Origin: Prasinococcaceae sp. CCMP 1430
Lineage: Eukaryota > Plantae > Prasinodermophyta
NCBI GenBank assembly: GCA_013416795.1
Contig: RQSC01000017.1
Location: 167,967-191,704 of the forward strand
Direction of reading: 5' to 3'
Length of the DNA: 23,738 nucleotides
The notes under the pieces are model-generated. The model was given only the letters and a program-made list of their open reading frames with translations, did no database searches and was not told where the DNA came from. The position numbers and the translations under genes were made by a program. Below, piece by piece: positions 991-20,789 of this stretch (position 1 is its first letter; the number at the start of each line of letters is the position of its first letter).

Positions 991-1279
991 ACGTGCACGT
1001 GTACGTGCACATGCACACGCTGGCATGGTGTGCTCGCGCACGTCAGCACCTGTGCACGTGCTCGCCCTGCTGTGTGTCCGCGCATGCACGTGTGCGGGCG
1101 CGGCACGTTCTGGAAGCTCCCGTCGGTGGCTGGCTCGGTGCGGTGCGCCCGCCCGGCAGCACGGGGTCGCGTCTGGGAATGCGCGCCGGATCTTTTGCGC
1201 TTTTTGGCGCCTTTCGAAACGCCGTGCAAAAATCCAAACGCCCGCGCTGCCGGGGCCACGAGTTGGTTCCACGTCAGCA
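991..1279. promoter_or_regulatory. Cluster of G-box / ACGT elements in the RPL40 - TOR/COL intergenic region
   Basis: CACGTG at 996, 1055 and 1087; CACGTCAGCA at 1039 and 1270. Function is inferred only. Confidence 0.35.
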
Positions 1280-1348
1280 TCTCGTGCTGCGCGTTTCGTG
1301 GCTCGGGGGCCGCGGGCGCGCGCGCGGCGCGCTCCCGGCCGCGAGCCG

Positions 1349-2245
1349 NTGGCGGAGCTACTGCCATCGGCAGGCCTCACCACGCTTTCCGGAGAGTACT
1401 ATCCGACCGTGGCACTGAATGCGCTCATGCGCGTGCTGCGCGACCGGTCGCAGGGCCACCACCACATGATGGTCGTGCGGTCACTCATGTTCATCTTCCG
1501 TGCGCTGGGCCTGGGCTGCGTACCATATTTGCCGCGCATCATCCCAGCGCTGCTGCAGGTGCTGCGCACATGCGAGGGTGGCCTGCGCGAATTCATCCTC
1601 AATCAGCTGCCTTCGCTTGTGGCCGTCATGCGCCAGCACGCGAGGCGATACCTCGACGACCTTCTGGAAGTCGTGCACGAGTACTGGGACGGCCCCCCGG
1701 AGCTGCGCCCGCATCTGCTGCGCCTCCTGGAGGAGCTGAGCGTGGCGCTGGGCGACGAGTTCCAAGCATACTTGCACACCATCGTGCCGCAGCTGGTAGG
1801 TGCCCTCGCTGAAGCAGAGCGCAGCGGCGACTTCAGCGCGGTGCCAGCGGTGCTGCACGCCCTGGAGGCGTTCGGGCGCTCCTTGTCAGAGCACTTCCAC
1901 CTGGTCTTGCCTGCGCTCGTCCGCCTCTTCAAGAGCGGCGCCGCCGGGGCCGGCGCGCCCGTCCGCGTGCGCATCGACGCCGTGCGCTCGCTCAAGCGGC
2001 TGCTGCCGCACATGCCAGTGTCCGCCTTTGCGAGTGCGATCGCACATCCGCTGATCCGCGCGGTCGAGGAAGGGCCTGCGAGTGTGCGCGCGGCAGCGCC
2101 CGAGGCGCTCTGCGCGCTGGCTGCTGCGTTGGGCAGTGACTTTGGCATTTTCGCACCTTTGCTCCGCCGCGTGCTTGAGCGAACGGGGGTGAACCACCCG
2201 CACCTCGAAGCGGCGCTTGCCGCGGCCGTCGCGGGGCGCAACCCG
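1349..2245 (+). CDS. TOR: TOR kinase middle HEAT-repeat fragment (about 300 aa), no FAT/FRB/kinase part
   Basis: EYYPTVALNALMRVLRD..VVRSLMFIFRALGLGCVPYLPRIIP..QHARRYL..LGDEF..LEAFGRSLSEHFHLVLPALVRLFK..LCALAAALGSDFGIF matches the plant TOR segment as I recall it (DYYSTVAINSLMRILRD..MGLGCVPYLPKVLP..LGEDFTIF). It starts at the single N and runs in frame into the B-box ORF. Confidence 0.9.
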
Positions 2246-2278
2246 TGCGAAGTGCTGCCGCCGTCCTACCTGGGCAGC

Positions 2279-5075
2279 ATGACGTCCGGTGGTGGTATGG
2301 ACACAGGGGATGCGGCGGCCACCGCCAGGGCCGCGCCGGCGGCCGCGGCAGCGCCTCTGCCCATGGCCGCAACGGCTGGGGGTGGGGGCAACCGCTGCGG
2401 GGGCGTTTGCGCGGACGCGGGTGGGCCGCTGCCGACTCCGCTGGTGAGCAAGCAGGTGGCGTGCGACATGTGCCACTCGGCGCGCGCGTCCATTTTCTGC
2501 GTGGCGGACAACGCGCGGCTTTGCGGGCGGTGCGACGAGCAGGTGCACGCGGTGAACGAGCTCGCGGCGCGTCACGTGCGCTCGTGGCTGTGCGACGTGT
2601 GCTCCGACGGCCCCGCGGCGATGTGTCTGCCCGCCGAGCGCATGACGTGCTGCAATGCGTGCGAGGTTCACATCGCGGCCATGCCCACGCGGATCGCGCG
2701 GGCGCCGCTGCCGAACGGCGGCTTTGTGCCCTCCAAGCCCTTCGTGCCGCCTGGAGGCGCGCAGGAGGCTCAGGGAGCGCCCCAAGGGCAACAGCCGCCA
2801 CCACGCGCGTCGCAGGCCGGCGTGCCGCAGGCGCTGCATCAGACAAGACGAGGGGAGGATGAAAGGCGGCAAGTGGGGCAGAGGAGCGACGAGTTGCGGC
2901 AGGTGGAGGTGCAGAGGCCTATGCTCGAAGGTAAGAGCGCGGGGCCTCGCGCGGCGCGCGGGATGGATTCACGAGAGAGAGCGCGGACCCGCGACCGCGA
3001 TGACGCCCGCAACCGCTCCCTCTCGCGCCGCTTGCGCGCACGCTGACGCATGCGCTTGCTCCTCTGTAGACAACGCGCCCGAGGCCTCTGCCTCGCCGCG
3101 CTGCGAGGTCGGCGCGGCTGCCTTTGACGACAACGCCCCCACAAACTCGTTCTCGCTGGCTATCGCCGCGACCGCGCCAACACCGATCGCACGCATGGGT
3201 GGCGCGGCGACGCCAAGCACGGGGATGACTCACCTCTCTATCTCCAGCGGTGACCTCCTCTGGGACGAGGATGCCGCGATGCTTCTTGGCACAACAGCTG
3301 CAAGCTTCCCCACGAGCACAAACAACAACGCCGTGAGTTCACAAGCACCACTGGCCGCCGACTCTGCGGCCAACACCGCCAACGCAGTCGGTGCCGTCGG
3401 CACCATTTCCGAGGGCGTCCGAGATGTGCGACCACAGGGCCCACCCATTTCAGGCAAAGACCCTGACTGCGGCGGGCGCACAGGCGCGCGCAGCGGCGGG
3501 GGCTTCGTTCCCGATGGCGGTGGCGAAGGTGCAGGCCGTGGAGCCGCGGGCAGTGCAGTCGCAGTCCGGCTGGCAGACATCTCGCAGGAGGTCATGCGTG
3601 GCCTCAACGAATCTGGCCCGCGCGGCGAGCAAGCCCCCTTCGTCGGGGGGGGCATGGCGGGGATTCAGACAGATCGATGCGGTGGCTGGATGGGCGCTGC
3701 GCAGGACCAGGCACAAGGGCGGCAGCAGCAGCAGCAGCAACAACAACAACAACAGCAACATCAGTCATCGACACAGGAGCAGCACCCCCGCGTGCCGCCG
3801 CCGCAGCAGCAGCAACAGCAGCAGCCGCTGCAGCAGCTGTGGGAGATGTGGGATCAGATGGGTGCGCAGCCGACAGAAGCACCCGCCGAGTACTTTGACA
3901 TGCGCACTCTGTCACCAGCAAAGCGACAGAAGGCACGTGGGGACCACCGCGTGCAGCAGCAGCGGCAGCGCCAGCCAGCAGTGGGGGCGCAGCAAGCCCC
4001 GGGTTCAATGGGCGGGTCGTACTCGAAAGCAGACAGCCAACCGGTCGTGCACGCCGCCTCCCGTGAGCAACAACAGCCATACATGAGTCAGGATGCCCCA
4101 CGCTCGCCGGTGCATCGCGCCCATCCACTCCAGTCGACTCACGGTGACGGGCGCATGCCGCCGAAGGGAGCAGTGCCACCGGCGTCCATGGTACCAAGTG
4201 AGAGGGTCGGTGGCAAACCAGAGCAGCTGAAGCCACCACATGGTCAGCGCGGTCCTGCAGGCCGGCAGTGCAAGCCTCCAATTGGCAGTGGCGCATCGTC
4301 TGCGTCGCGCCAGTCTCTGGCTCCCAACTCTTACACGACTTCATTCGGCGTATCTCCGGGCTCCACTGTCCTCGACGCTGCACAGGCGGCGTTCGGCCCG
4401 GTCCAGCCGCTGCCAAAGCGCGACGTGCGCGGACTCAGCGGCGAGAGGAGCGACGGCAGGACGGCTGGTAGTGCGTCGGGCATGCGTGCGTCGGGCATGC
4501 ACTATCGCTTCGCGGATGCTACGGGCCGCGTGCGCAGCGTTAGTGGCGGGGGCAGCACCTTGAGCGGCTCTGCCGACAAGCGGGATGGCGCAGGCAGCAG
4601 TGGTGGCAGCGGCAGCGGCGCCGGCAGCGGTGGTGGGGAGGGCAGCGGCGGGAGCCCCGGCAGATACGACAACGCTGACGGCCTGACCGTCGCCGCCGCG
4701 GCCATCGCGAGGGCCGAGGTCGCCGCAACTATCCGTCACGATGCACTGATGCGGTACCAGGAGAAGCGCCGCAAACGCACCTTCAAAAAGATCATCCGCT
4801 ACGAGAGTAGGCAGGAGCGCGCCATTGGACGCGTGCGCATCAAAGGCCGCTTCGCGAAGATCGACAAGAACGCTTCCGCGGACGTCACTGCGAACACCAC
4901 CACCACCGCGGACACAACTACGGACACTGCCGCGCAAGAGAATCCTGCAGAGGCGAAGGCCAGTAGGCGAGTGCATGGCGCGCTCAGTTCGGATGCGCAG
5001 CTCTCCAAGGACGTGAGCATGGTGTCGGAGCCGTCTCCACACGCCGGGCCGCGCGCGAAGGCAATGGACGCGTAG
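2279..5075 (+). CDS. CONSTANS-like B-box + CCT transcription factor; exons 2279(start uncertain)-2930 and 3070-5075
   Basis: B-box1 CDMC..C..D...LC..CDEQVH..N....RH at 2462-2590, a degenerate B-box2 after it, and a CCT domain RHDALMRYQEKRRKRTFKKIIRYESRQERAIGRVRIKGRFAK at 4734-4859. Intron 2931-3069 (GTAAGA..GCTGAC..TGTAG, phase 1) joins the two frames exactly. Alternative ATGs are at 2297 and 2363; the protein is 885 aa from 2279. Confidence 0.9.
3723..3758 (+). repeat. CAG/CAA tract encoding Q12 in the COL protein
   Basis: Twelve consecutive CAG/CAA codons, with a further Q-rich run shortly downstream. Confidence 0.95.
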
Positions 5076-5140
5076 CAGGCGGCCAGGTTTGTGCGCTCAA
5101 TAGATACAGTTACAGCACATGCTACATGTACATCGCGCTC

Positions 5141-5819
5141 TCAGGACTTGGCTCGGGCGTATGGGTGCGAGCTGAAGCGCCAGCTCGCGCGCGCTCGGCC
5201 CGCTTTGCCGATTCTTTTTCGCGCGCCGCCGAGTACTGTGGCACCGCCTCCGCCGCCGCTCGGCTGGTGGTTTGCGGGCGGCGCGCCTCGCTTCACAGCT
5301 GCCCCCGCCAAGCCCATGTCGGCGCGCAGGTCCCCCGCGGAGACGCCAGCCGCTCCGCCTGGCCGTTTCCTCCCGCCGATCCCCTTTCCTCCGTGCCTGG
5401 ATGTCGACAACGAGCCACCCCAGCTCTCCCTCGCTCGCCGCACCGCAGTCCCCGTCGCAGCAGGCGGCGCCGGGGCTTCGGCCCACCGCTGGTGTGCGCT
5501 GGCCTCACCTGCTCTGCCCATTCCCGCCTTCCCCACGCTCGCACCTTCGTCCGAGATCTGCTCGTAGGCGGCCTTGGCCGCCACGAACGCATCGGCGAGC
5601 AGCTTCCCGTCGGACGCGTTTGCCGCAGCTTGCCTGTCCGGATGCAGCGCCAGGGCGAGCGCGCGGAAGCGCTCGCGGGCCAGCCGCTGCAGCGCGAGCC
5701 CGTCCTCGGCGCCGCTCGATCCCGACGGGGAGCTCGCGCTCGCTCCCTCGCCGACGCCGAGCACACCGGCTGGACCGGCGCCGCTCGTCACGGCGGCGAG
5801 CACGCGCCGCGCCTCGGCG
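5141..5819 (-). CDS. J-domain (DnaJ-type) protein, 3' part; 5' part in gap
   Basis: RERFRALALALHPDRQ...DAFVAAKAAYEQISD with the HPD motif at 5636-5644. TGA at 5141-5143 and TGTAA on the minus strand at 5110-5114. Confidence 0.75.
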
Positions 5820-6937
5820 NNNNNNNNNNNNNNNNNNNNNNNNNNNNNNNNNNNNNNNNNNNNNNNNNNNNNNNNNNNNNNNNNNNNNNNNNNNNNNNNN
5901 NNNNNNNNNNNNNNNNNNNNNNNNNNNNNNNNNNNNNNNNNNNNNNNNNNNNNNNNNNNNNNNNNNNNNNNNNNNNNNNNNNNNNNNNNNNNNNNNNNNN
6001 NNNNNNNNNNNNNNNNNNNNNNNNNNNNNNNNNNNNNNNNNNNNNNNNNNNNNNNNNNNNNNNNNNNNNNNNNNNNNNNNNNNNNNNNNNNNNNNNNNNN
6101 NNNNNNNNNNNNNNNNNNNNNNNNNNNNNNNNNNNNNNNNNNNNNNNNNNNNNNNNNNNNNNNNNNNNNNNNNNNNNNNNNNNNNNNNNNNNNNNNNNNN
6201 NNNNNNNNNNNNNNNNNNNNNNNNNNNNNNNNNNNNNNNNNNNNNNNNNNNNNNNNNNNNNNNNNNNNNNNNNNNNNNNNNNNNNNNNNNNNNNNNNNNN
6301 NNNNNNNNNNNNNNNNNNNNNNNNNNNNNNNNNNNNNNNNNNNNNNNNNNNNNNNNNNNNNNNNNNNNNNNNNNNNNNNNNNNNNNNNNNNNNNNNNNNN
6401 NNNNNNNNNNNNNNNNNNNNNNNNNNNNNNNNNNNNNNNNNNNNNNNNNNNNNNNNNNNNNNNNNNNNNNNNNNNNNNNNNNNNNNNNNNNNNNNNNNNN
6501 NNNNNNNNNNNNNNNNNNNNNNNNNNNNNNNNNNNNNNNNNNNNNNNNNNNNNNNNNNNNNNNNNNNNNNNNNNNNNNNNNNNNNNNNNNNNNNNNNNNN
6601 NNNNNNNNNNNNNNNNNNNNNNNNNNNNNNNNNNNNNNNNNNNNNNNNNNNNNNNNNNNNNNNNNNNNNNNNNNNNNNNNNNNNNNNNNNNNNNNNNNNN
6701 NNNNNNNNNNNNNNNNNNNNNNNNNNNNNNNNNNNNNNNNCCCTCCCTCCGCCCCTCTTCCGGCCCGATGCGCGCGCGCACGCGCGCAGCAGCTGCGGCC
6801 GCCGCGCGCGGCGGCCTCGGGCGCATCGCCGCCGCATTTTCACCCTAGGGTGCTCGCGCCGCGCACGGCCGCCGCGCTCCGCCGCCGCCGCATTACGTCG
6901 CGCTGACACCGCCGCCGCCTCGCCCGCGTCCGCACAG

Positions 6938-13049: not shown

Positions 13050-14441
13050 AATGAACCACCACCAGAACTGGTGGAACGGCTCGTACTGCCGCCACAACGG
13101 CAGCAGGAAAGCAATGCGCGACAGGCCCTCGCAGTTCTTGAACGAGTCGACCACGAGCGGGTGCTGCGGCTCGAAGACGCACTGGGCGACCTCGTTCGAC
13201 TTGAGCGCGTGGGGCGACTCGAGCTTCTTGCCGCCGGTCTCCTTGCCGACCTTCCAGTCGATCGCGGTCATCTTGCACGCGGAGCGGCCGCAGCGCACGA
13301 AGCCGATCGGCGAGTAGCCGACCTTGAGCTCGCCCGGGACGTCGAGGGTCTGGATCTGCGCCGCGAAGTCCTTGATGTGCTTGAGGGTGTCGTCCTTCTT
13401 GTACACCATCACGTCGCCGACGCGGGGCATGTTGCCCTTGTCGAGACCCTTGATGTTCATGCCGACGTTGTCACCCGGGTTGGCCTCCTCCACGCGCTTG
13501 TGGTGCATCTCCACGGTGAACACCTTGCCGGTGCACGGGGTGCCCGCAGTGTGGGTGGGCATGAAGATGACCTCCTCACCCGGCTTGACCACGCCCTGCT
13601 CGACGCGGCCGGTGAGCACATCGCCCACGCCCTTGATCTTGTACACGCCCGAGATCGGCAGGCGCATGGGGGCCGAGGGGTTGCGCTCCGGCTTGGACGC
13701 CATCTTCTCGACGCAGTCGAGCAGGCAGTCGATGTGGAGGTCGCCCTTGGAGCAGGTGATGTCCATGCCCTTCCACCACGGCATGTTGTCCGACTTGGAG
13801 AGCAGGTTGTCGCCCATCCAGCCCGAGATGGGGAGGACCGGCACCGACTTGGCGACGAAGTCCTTCTTCCAGCCCACGCGGCCGAGCATGTTCTGCATCT
13901 CGTCGCGGATCTCCTTGTAGCGGTCCTCGGAGTACTTGCCGCCGATGGCCGCGTCCATCTTGTTGACGCCCACGATGAGCTGCTTCACGCCGAGCAGGTT
14001 GATGAGGCGGGCGTGCTGGCGGGTCTGGCCCTGCACCTCGCCGGCCTTGTGGTTGCCCTTCTGGATGGCGGTGGTGAAGTTACCGTCGGCCGGCACCATG
14101 AGGAGCGCGACGTCGGCCTGCGCGGCACCCGAGATCATGTTCTTGATGAAGTCACGATGGCCCGGCGCGTCGATGATGGTGTAGTGCCAGGTGTCGGTGA
14201 AGAACTCCTTGGTGGTGCACGAGATGGTCACACCGCGCTCGCGCTCCTCCTTCTGGCGGTCCATGTAGAACGCGAAGGCGAACGACGACTTGCCGAGGGC
14301 ATCGGCCTCGGCGCGCAGCTTCTCGATCTCACCGAGCCCCTACGGCGGCTCGAGCTTCTACTCCGCCGGCCACCACCAGCTGAACGGGGAGTCGACGTGG
14401 CCGCAGATCACGATGGAAAGATGCTCCTTGTCGCCCGACAT
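13050..14441 (-). CDS. EFL: Elongation factor-like GTPase EFL, intronless, 463 aa after correcting two complemented 55-nt blocks
   Basis: MSGDKEHLSIVICGHVDS, DAPGHRDFIKNM, the EFL-type TTAIQKGNHKAGEVQGQTRQHARLINLLG, and NKMD. Base-complementing 14333-14387 and 13050-13104 restores [19 protein letters not shown] and DGNTAVMLGKVVKTTTK*. Confidence 0.95.
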
Positions 14442-15413
14442 CTTGAGTGTGTGTGTGGATCTGCGAGGGCGGCAGGCGCGGGAGGGCGGCGGTGCGTGCG
14501 GCGTCAGCGCCTGCGCACACCGGCGGCGCGCTGCGCGTGCTGGCGGCCCGGCGCATTTCGGCATTTTGGGGGGGGGGNNNNNNNNNNNNNNNNNNNNNNN
14601 NNNNNNNNNNNNNNNNNNNNNNNNNNNNNNNNNNNNNNNNNNNNNNNNNNNNNNNNNNNNNNNNNNNNNNNNNNNNNNNNNNNNNNNNNNNNNNNNNNNN
14701 NNNNNNNNNNNNNNNNNNNNNNNNNNNNNNNNNNNNNNNNNNNNNNNNNNNNNNNNNNNNNNNNNNNNNNNNNNNNNNNNNNNNNNNNNNNNNNNNNNNN
14801 NNNNNNNNNNNNNNNNNNNNNNNNNNNNNNNNNNNNNNNNNNNNNNNNNNNNNNNNNNNNNNNNNNNCCGCGGGCGGCGTCGCCCCGCGCGCCGCCCGGC
14901 AGCGCGGCATTCATCTCCGCGCGCCGAACGCGTTAAAAAAAAAAAAAAAAAGGAGGACCAAACGAGGCGAAAAGACGGAGGGGCCGAATTCGCGGGGACA
15001 ACTCGCGCAAGAGAAATTTCACTCCTTTTTCGCAGCCACGAGTGCGTAAACTGACCGTGATTGTGCATCCACGAGGCCAGCGCCAAATCACTTTTCGGCC
15101 ACCGCAAGTTGAGAAGAAAAATCAAAATAAATTAAAAATCAAAATCGGAGGCTGGCTGGCTGGTGCAGCACAGCGCGTGCAGTCAGGGTCAGTCGATCGA
15201 TCGATGGGACGCGCGGGGGAACCGGACGTGTTTGGGGGGGGGTGCGCTGACTCGAATTGCAAACCGCGGGTGCAAACCCAGCTTTGGTGGGGAACCGACC
15301 GCAGAGAAAAAGAAGTAGGAGACAGCGGAAGCGGAATGCGAAGGGGCGTTCAGTGTGCAGTCGGTCATTTCACTCACTCAACTTCACTCGCAGTACTCAC
15401 TGCTGTTGGTGGT

Positions 15414-20063: not shown

Positions 20064-20789
20064 NNNNNNNNNNNNNNNNNNNNNNNNNNNNNNNNNNNNN
20101 NNNNNNNNNNNNNNNNNNNNNNNNNNNNNNNNNNNNNNNNNNNNNNNNNNNNNNNNNNNNNNNNNNNNNNNNNNNNNNNNNNNNNNNNNNNNNNNNNNNN
20201 NNNNNNNNNNNNNNNNNNNNNNNNNNNNNNNNNNNNNNNNNNNNNNNNNNNNNNNNNNNNNNNNNNNNNNNNNNNNNNNNNNNNNNNNNNNNNNNNNNNN
20301 NNNNNNNNNNNNNNNNNNNNNNNNNNNNNNNNNNNNNNNNNNNNNNNNNNNNNNNNNNNNNNNNNNNNNNNNNNNNNNNNNNNNNNNNNNNNNNNNNNNN
20401 NNNNNNNNNNNNNNNNNNNNNNNNNNNNNNNNNNNNNNNNNNNNNNNNNNNNNNNNNNNNNNNNNNNNNNNNNNNNNNNNNNNNNNNNNNNNNNNNNNNN
20501 NNNNNNNNNNNNNNNNACGTGTGGCTGACGGCGCGCGCCGACCGCGCACGCGCACGCCAGCGCGCGCGCGAGTGCGAGCACGCGAGCGAGCGAGCAAGCG
20601 CGCAGGCGCGACGTGCGGTCCTCAGGCCGACTCGAGTCTGGCGACGCCGGGCGTGCGCATGGGTTTTGAGCTAGCGGAGGAAGGTGGGGTGGCGCCCGCG
20701 CCTCCTTGGGCCCTGCCGGGGCGCAGCAGGGCGCCGCCGCGGCCGCCAGGTGCAAACTTGACGGCGCGAAGTGGCGACGGTTTTCTCGT

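Follow-up and report, generated by a model that had tools for sequence, protein, structure and literature searches.

A TOR segment in frame with a CONSTANS-like gene in a prasinodermophyte scaffold is most probably an assembly misjoin

The window analysed here is a stretch of 23,738 bp from a contig of Prasinococcaceae sp. CCMP 1430. Its GC content is 68%, and it contains runs of N at 524-623, 5820-6740, 14578-14867 and 20064-20516 as well as a single N at position 1349. From 1025 to 3046 one reading frame remains open without interruption, passing from a segment of TOR through an exon that encodes a B-box. A preliminary description had reported a stop-free run from the middle HEAT region of TOR into a CONSTANS-like (COL) gene, and this run is indeed present; the 1195-aa translation given there starts from 1349, which is itself the single N. 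The features of the region are listed below, with the evidence for each in parentheses.

1349, no strand: single-N scaffold join, left edge of the TOR piece (listing of Ns and start of homology)
1350-2311, plus strand: probable misplaced fragment of a TOR gene, middle HEAT region (matches to mTOR, Pfam and the TOR of a relative)
2311-2312, no strand: probable chimeric breakpoint, window ...GGGGAT/GCGGCGGCCACC... (wild contigs and PRCOL_00001215)
2312-2930, plus strand: COL exon 1; the window lacks its true 5' part (matches to B-box, PRCOL_00001215 and wild contigs)
about 2459-2587, plus strand: B-box 1 (CONSTANS B-box structures)
about 2591-2670, plus strand: degenerate B-box 2 (Cys pattern by eye)
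2931-3069, plus strand: intron, GT..AG, phase 1, 139 nt (read from the sequence)
3070-5075, plus strand: COL exon 2, 667 codons, with a long Gln/Ala/Gly-rich middle (CCT and match to a wild ORF)
4734-4859, plus strand: CCT motif (Pfam, Hd1/CO CCT)
5073-5075, plus strand: TAG stop of COL (sequence)

The genuine content of the locus is most probably an ordinary COL gene. B-box 1 has the spacing C-X2-C-X8-C-X7-C-X2-C-X4-H-X8-H of CONSTANS and its relatives (Arabidopsis CO and COL2, rice Hd1) and matches the CONSTANS/COL2 B-box structures 7vsq and 7vsp, with a best E-value of 1.8e-16 (7vsq; Arabidopsis CONSTANS); its match to Pfam zf-B_box (1.2e-4, 22.6 bits) falls just under the cutoff of 24.1 bits. 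Of the two B-boxes originally proposed, only this one is recognised by such comparisons. The second differs from a canonical CONSTANS-like box in being degenerate: its Cys pattern is kept, as judged by eye, but the last His is gone, and Pfam gives no hit up to an E-value of 10. The CCT motif, on the other hand, scores well above threshold (PF06203, E 1e-13; score 51.5 bits, cutoff 28.4) and aligns with the CCT of Hd1 and CO (E 1e-7), which in those proteins binds NF-YB/YC and DNA. Homology with CO and Hd1 predicts that the COL CCT binds DNA jointly with NF-YB/YC and that protein contacts are made by the B-box. The single clean intron that had been described ahead of the CCT can be read from the sequence, with GT at 2931, AG at 3068-3069 and a polypyrimidine tract ahead of the acceptor; an intron between B-box and CCT is a further likeness to CONSTANS-like genes. 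The Gln/Ala/Gly-rich middle of the protein, at about 550 aa, is very long for the family.

A word search with COL exon 1 returned P0001, a 343-aa ORF on Tara Oceans metagenome and Logan contigs. We fetched four of these contigs, L001 (4204 bp), L002, L003 and L004, representing three or more Tara samples; the Logan assembly of run ERR11733584, L002, is not counted to any of these samples. The protein clusters list more contigs with the same ORF calls. The two COL exons were searched one by one, no spliced joined protein being used as a query. Over window positions 2312-5819, all four contigs align without gaps at 99.1-99.6% identity (L002 only over 2312-3750, where the contig ends), and the wild ORF P0005 is 98% identical to COL exon 2. 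The differences are distributed as follows: exon 1 shows synonymous differences only, the CCT (4734-4859) is invariant, and the low-complexity middle carries both synonymous and nonsynonymous changes. Difference density is highest in the intron (5 in 139), where L001, L003 and L004 have kept the same splice sites. Downstream of COL, the minus strand at 5141-5819 encodes LALHPDR, an HPD motif like that of J-domains, in an ORF that continues into the gap (L001:3232-4203); the wild contigs supply about 300 bp of the sequence lost in the window's 921-N gap.

The COL family is defined by a B-box and a CCT within one protein. The published annotation of Prasinoderma coloniale differs in offering only a 212-aa B-box protein, PRCOL_00001215-RA (EukProt EP00793 Prasinoderma_coloniale, here P0168), which was found in the protein cluster of the B-box exon. 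This model ends ...PMLE-ARG-stop, an end that fits splicing from the donor 2930/GT to an acceptor at 3216-3217, with a stop directly after it. Taken at face value, and given that no annotated CCT-bearing protein of at least 443 aa was found, the model would make the B-box exon and the CCT exon separate genes for a B-box-only and a CCT-only protein. We regard this as unlikely, as such a division would break up the architecture that defines the family, and the wild population shows constraint on the B-box exon as well as on the CCT. A good polypyrimidine tract, moreover, precedes the acceptor at 3068-3069, and splicing there leads in phase into the 667-codon frame with the conserved CCT, whereas the acceptor at 3217 has no tract. 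These splice signals suggest that the 212-aa model is either a mis-annotation or a product of alternative splicing. With a conserved CCT exon in phase downstream of its B-box, the genuine P. coloniale COL gene seems to be under-annotated.

The sequence to the left of the COL gene is of a different nature. The piece at 1350-2311 is 962 bp long and encodes about 320 aa, or about 12% of a TOR protein, in agreement with the roughly 300 aa of middle HEAT region first described. Residues 936-1219 of human mTOR match 1352-2278 in a full-length alignment (E 8e-60), yeast TOR2 also aligns along the entire length of the piece, and the Pfam domain mTOR_dom (PF11865) is found over the same 1352-2278 interval at 8.5e-29. 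The best match of an exhaustive search was P0006, a 2733-aa prasinodermophyte TOR on Tara contigs of 9.5-13.9 kb with a complete domain set (mTOR_dom, FAT, FRB, kinase and FATC). The piece corresponds, again end to end and without gaps, to residues 1005 to about 1319-1324 of this protein, at 87% amino acid identity; against the relative's TOR contig L005 the nucleotide identity is 78.8%. These identities indicate that P0006 is the TOR of a sister species. In that sister Prasinoderma species from Tara, TOR is a single intronless ORF of 2733 codons (L005:955-9156); a variant ORF call of 2888 aa occurs on L008.

What distinguishes the window's copy from TOR and mTOR proteins is that it is a small part of the protein, edged by an N on one side and a chimeric breakpoint on the other. 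A tblastn search of the window with full-length P0006 gave a sole match, at 1379-2296, and none to N-HEAT, FAT, FRB, kinase or FATC, so the earlier statement that the window holds no second TOR sequence stands. The piece ends about 45 residues ahead of the relative's RAWESSQRSTKEDW, just before the conserved block, as had been noted. In P0006 the corresponding segment comes after a low-complexity stretch of Gly and Ala (...GGAGGAGANDGEGAAAL/AELLPS) and is followed by TDGAAAAAAAAGS, the protein reading ...TDG-AAAAAAAA-GSDGS... with an alanine run after the piece. With the sister-species TOR as intact reference, the dN/dS ratio of the fragment that the preliminary description had proposed as a check is 0.116, with dS of about 1 over 315 codons. 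A ratio this low makes the piece look like part of a working TOR; it appears to be under strong purifying selection and to have evolved within such a gene. All that a word search with the TOR piece returned were distant TOR fragments (identities of 46% and 40%); a near-identical wild TOR ORF of 176-560 aa was not among them. No match was obtained when JGI metagenome contigs were scanned with peptides of the piece, and no synteny was found between the neighbour genes on the 13.9-kb TOR contig and the window.

Other assemblies carry different sequence upstream of COL. The agreement between window and wild contigs stops sharply at 2311/2312 (a slash marks the join): the window reads ...ATGGACACAGGGGAT/GCGGCGGCCACC, while the wild contigs read ...GCGATGGTGTCC/GCGGCGGCCACC. 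The window has no match for the 383-403 bp that precede this point in the wild contigs, nor do these contigs have one for window positions 1350-2311; when the window was searched by sensitive BLAST with the 402 bp of wild upstream sequence, nothing came up beyond chance matches that were short and GC-rich. In L001 the COL frame is closed upstream by a stop at 79-81 and has its own ATG at 169 (MPRKKAP...).

The published P. coloniale model leads to the same place. PRCOL_00001215-RA begins MVSAAATARAAP, as the wild upstream sequence does, and its start MVS/AAATARAAP stands against DTGD/AAATARAAP in the window; past 2312 it is identical to the window's exon 1 at 206 of 206 residues, which agrees with P. 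coloniale as the source of the window. The DNA for its N-terminus, ATGGTGTCCGCGGCGGCC, is absent from the window. Near-identical wild genomes and the published P. coloniale assembly are thus two independent sources in which no TOR precedes COL. The published genome is a gap-free PacBio/NextDenovo assembly of 22 chromosomes, and the paper describing it makes no mention of TOR or CONSTANS; the N-gapped window must be a different assembly. The novel TOR-COL fusion protein put forward at the outset is not supported by these data, since both sources carry sequence other than TOR before 2312.

At the left edge, homology to the relative's TOR starts at 1347-1352, within 3 nt of the single N. The single N is a scaffold join, so the TOR piece begins at a contig boundary. 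The 324 nt immediately to the left (1025-1348) are open in frame and lack a coding signature, with a GC3 of 0.67 compared to 0.81 in the TOR piece. An exact 24-mer from this left flank (window 1209-1232) had no match in JGI metagenome contigs. The left neighbour of the presumably misassembled region is a ubiquitin-coding exon on the minus strand at 1-420 (...LRLRGG and a ribosomal-protein-like tail, read by eye), with an apparent intron acceptor directly after the two first codons.

We conclude that the TOR-COL junction is very probably an assembly misjoin or chimera in which a piece of TOR was set before an ordinary COL gene, and we put the probability of this reading at roughly 0.92. The preliminary description had rated a misjoin as at least as likely as a fusion; the present data favor it and place its edges at N 1349 and at 2311/2312. 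A 962-bp piece of the alga's own TOR gene would have been placed ahead of the COL gene. In TOR, the piece would be unique sequence with a Gly/Ala-rich stretch on one side and an alanine run on the other. The scaffold join marked by the N at 1349 would form its left edge, and a chimeric join through GC-rich Ala codons (GCGGCGGCC...) present in both the TOR linker and the N-terminal region of COL its right edge. The assembler step responsible may have been either the formation of a chimeric contig or a wrong gap fill.

The sequence at the join is consistent with this mechanism. In the window, MDTGD/AAATARAAP lies at the expected start of the TOR alanine run, and the COL side begins GCG GCG GCC. 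The GC-rich words that the TOR linker of the relative shares with the N-terminal region of COL are 9-12 nt long, in a relative at 79% nucleotide identity; at the join, the true TOR of the sequenced strain would probably have more than 9 nt in common with COL. Because both sides read the shared codons as Ala, the join keeps the frame automatically, and in-frame continuity is therefore no evidence of a real fusion. At 68% GC, no stop appears across the join. The low-complexity Gly/Ala sequence flanking the segment in TOR, together with a join at Ala codons, thus explains both the misjoin and the kept frame. The situation resembles known chimeric contigs and wrong gap fills at low-complexity GC-rich repeats, in which a small unique segment has low-complexity flanks. 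As in short-read misassemblies, the join runs through a short GC-rich repeat common to both sides, the opposite edge is an N, and the scaffold has further artefacts.

One of these further artefacts can be demonstrated outright, which bears out the earlier remark that the scaffold contains other assembly errors. At 14333-14387, a block of 55 nt stands as its complement, without the reversal that should go with it. When this block is complemented in place, the P-loop GHVDSGKSTTTG of an EFL GTPase reappears, the minus strand then reading ...GHVDSGKSTTTGRLIFELGG..., whereas the sequence as given has two stops there. It is proven that this block is a data-processing artefact, and the scaffold accordingly holds demonstrable artefacts. 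For the sister block at 13050-13104, a quick test by in-place complementing gave no open minus-strand frame.

We also considered whether the sequenced clone might carry a true, strain-specific duplication or insertion of the TOR fragment before COL. Such an insertion could give rise to a fusion protein. The likelier outcome would be that the fragment lies dead in the 5' region of COL, whose translation would then begin at an internal ATG such as 2279 or 2362. In favor of an insertion, the fragment is undamaged, stays in frame and contains no stop, and the wild contigs, at a divergence of about 0.7-0.9% from the window, are not the same clone. We nevertheless consider an insertion of this kind very improbable. 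The published P. coloniale model carries the wild-type upstream sequence, and some 400 bp or more of native upstream sequence, with the native ATG in it, is absent from the window rather than shifted. Both edges of the piece fall in low-complexity sequence flanking it in TOR, of a kind at which assembly from short reads breaks, and the sequence is not continuous across both of them, the left edge being the single N at 1349. That a recent in-frame insertion of the TOR M-HEAT segment at the COL 5' end is in addition expressed as a HEAT-B-box-CCT chimera would be a slighter chance again.

A conserved, natural TOR-HEAT/COL fusion gene, tying TOR-complex contacts to a photoperiod factor, is scarcely credible. 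The open reading frame alone speaks for it, and it is contradicted by L001-L004 and the published annotation, all of which lack the junction. The relative's TOR, in turn, runs on normally into FAT, FRB, kinase and FATC. Among related proteins we found no TOR-COL fusion: the word searches led to COL ORFs without TOR, and the exhaustive search led to TOR without B-box or CCT. Were such a fusion true, it would be an unprecedented physical link between TOR nutrient signalling and a photoperiod/clock factor in a deep-branching green alga.

With the junction read as a misjoin, the practical consequences concern annotation. Gene models derived from this scaffold would include a false 1195-aa chimera, and the true TOR locus of the assembly may be without this piece or show a gap at its position. 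The region upstream of COL seems to break short-read assemblies generally. The 5' ends of the wild Tara contigs L001 (1-25), L003 and L004 fall within about 20 bp of one another, at a (GC)n run about 400 bp before the breakpoint, and the left flank of the TOR piece in the window (1310-1348) is likewise rich in GC dinucleotides.
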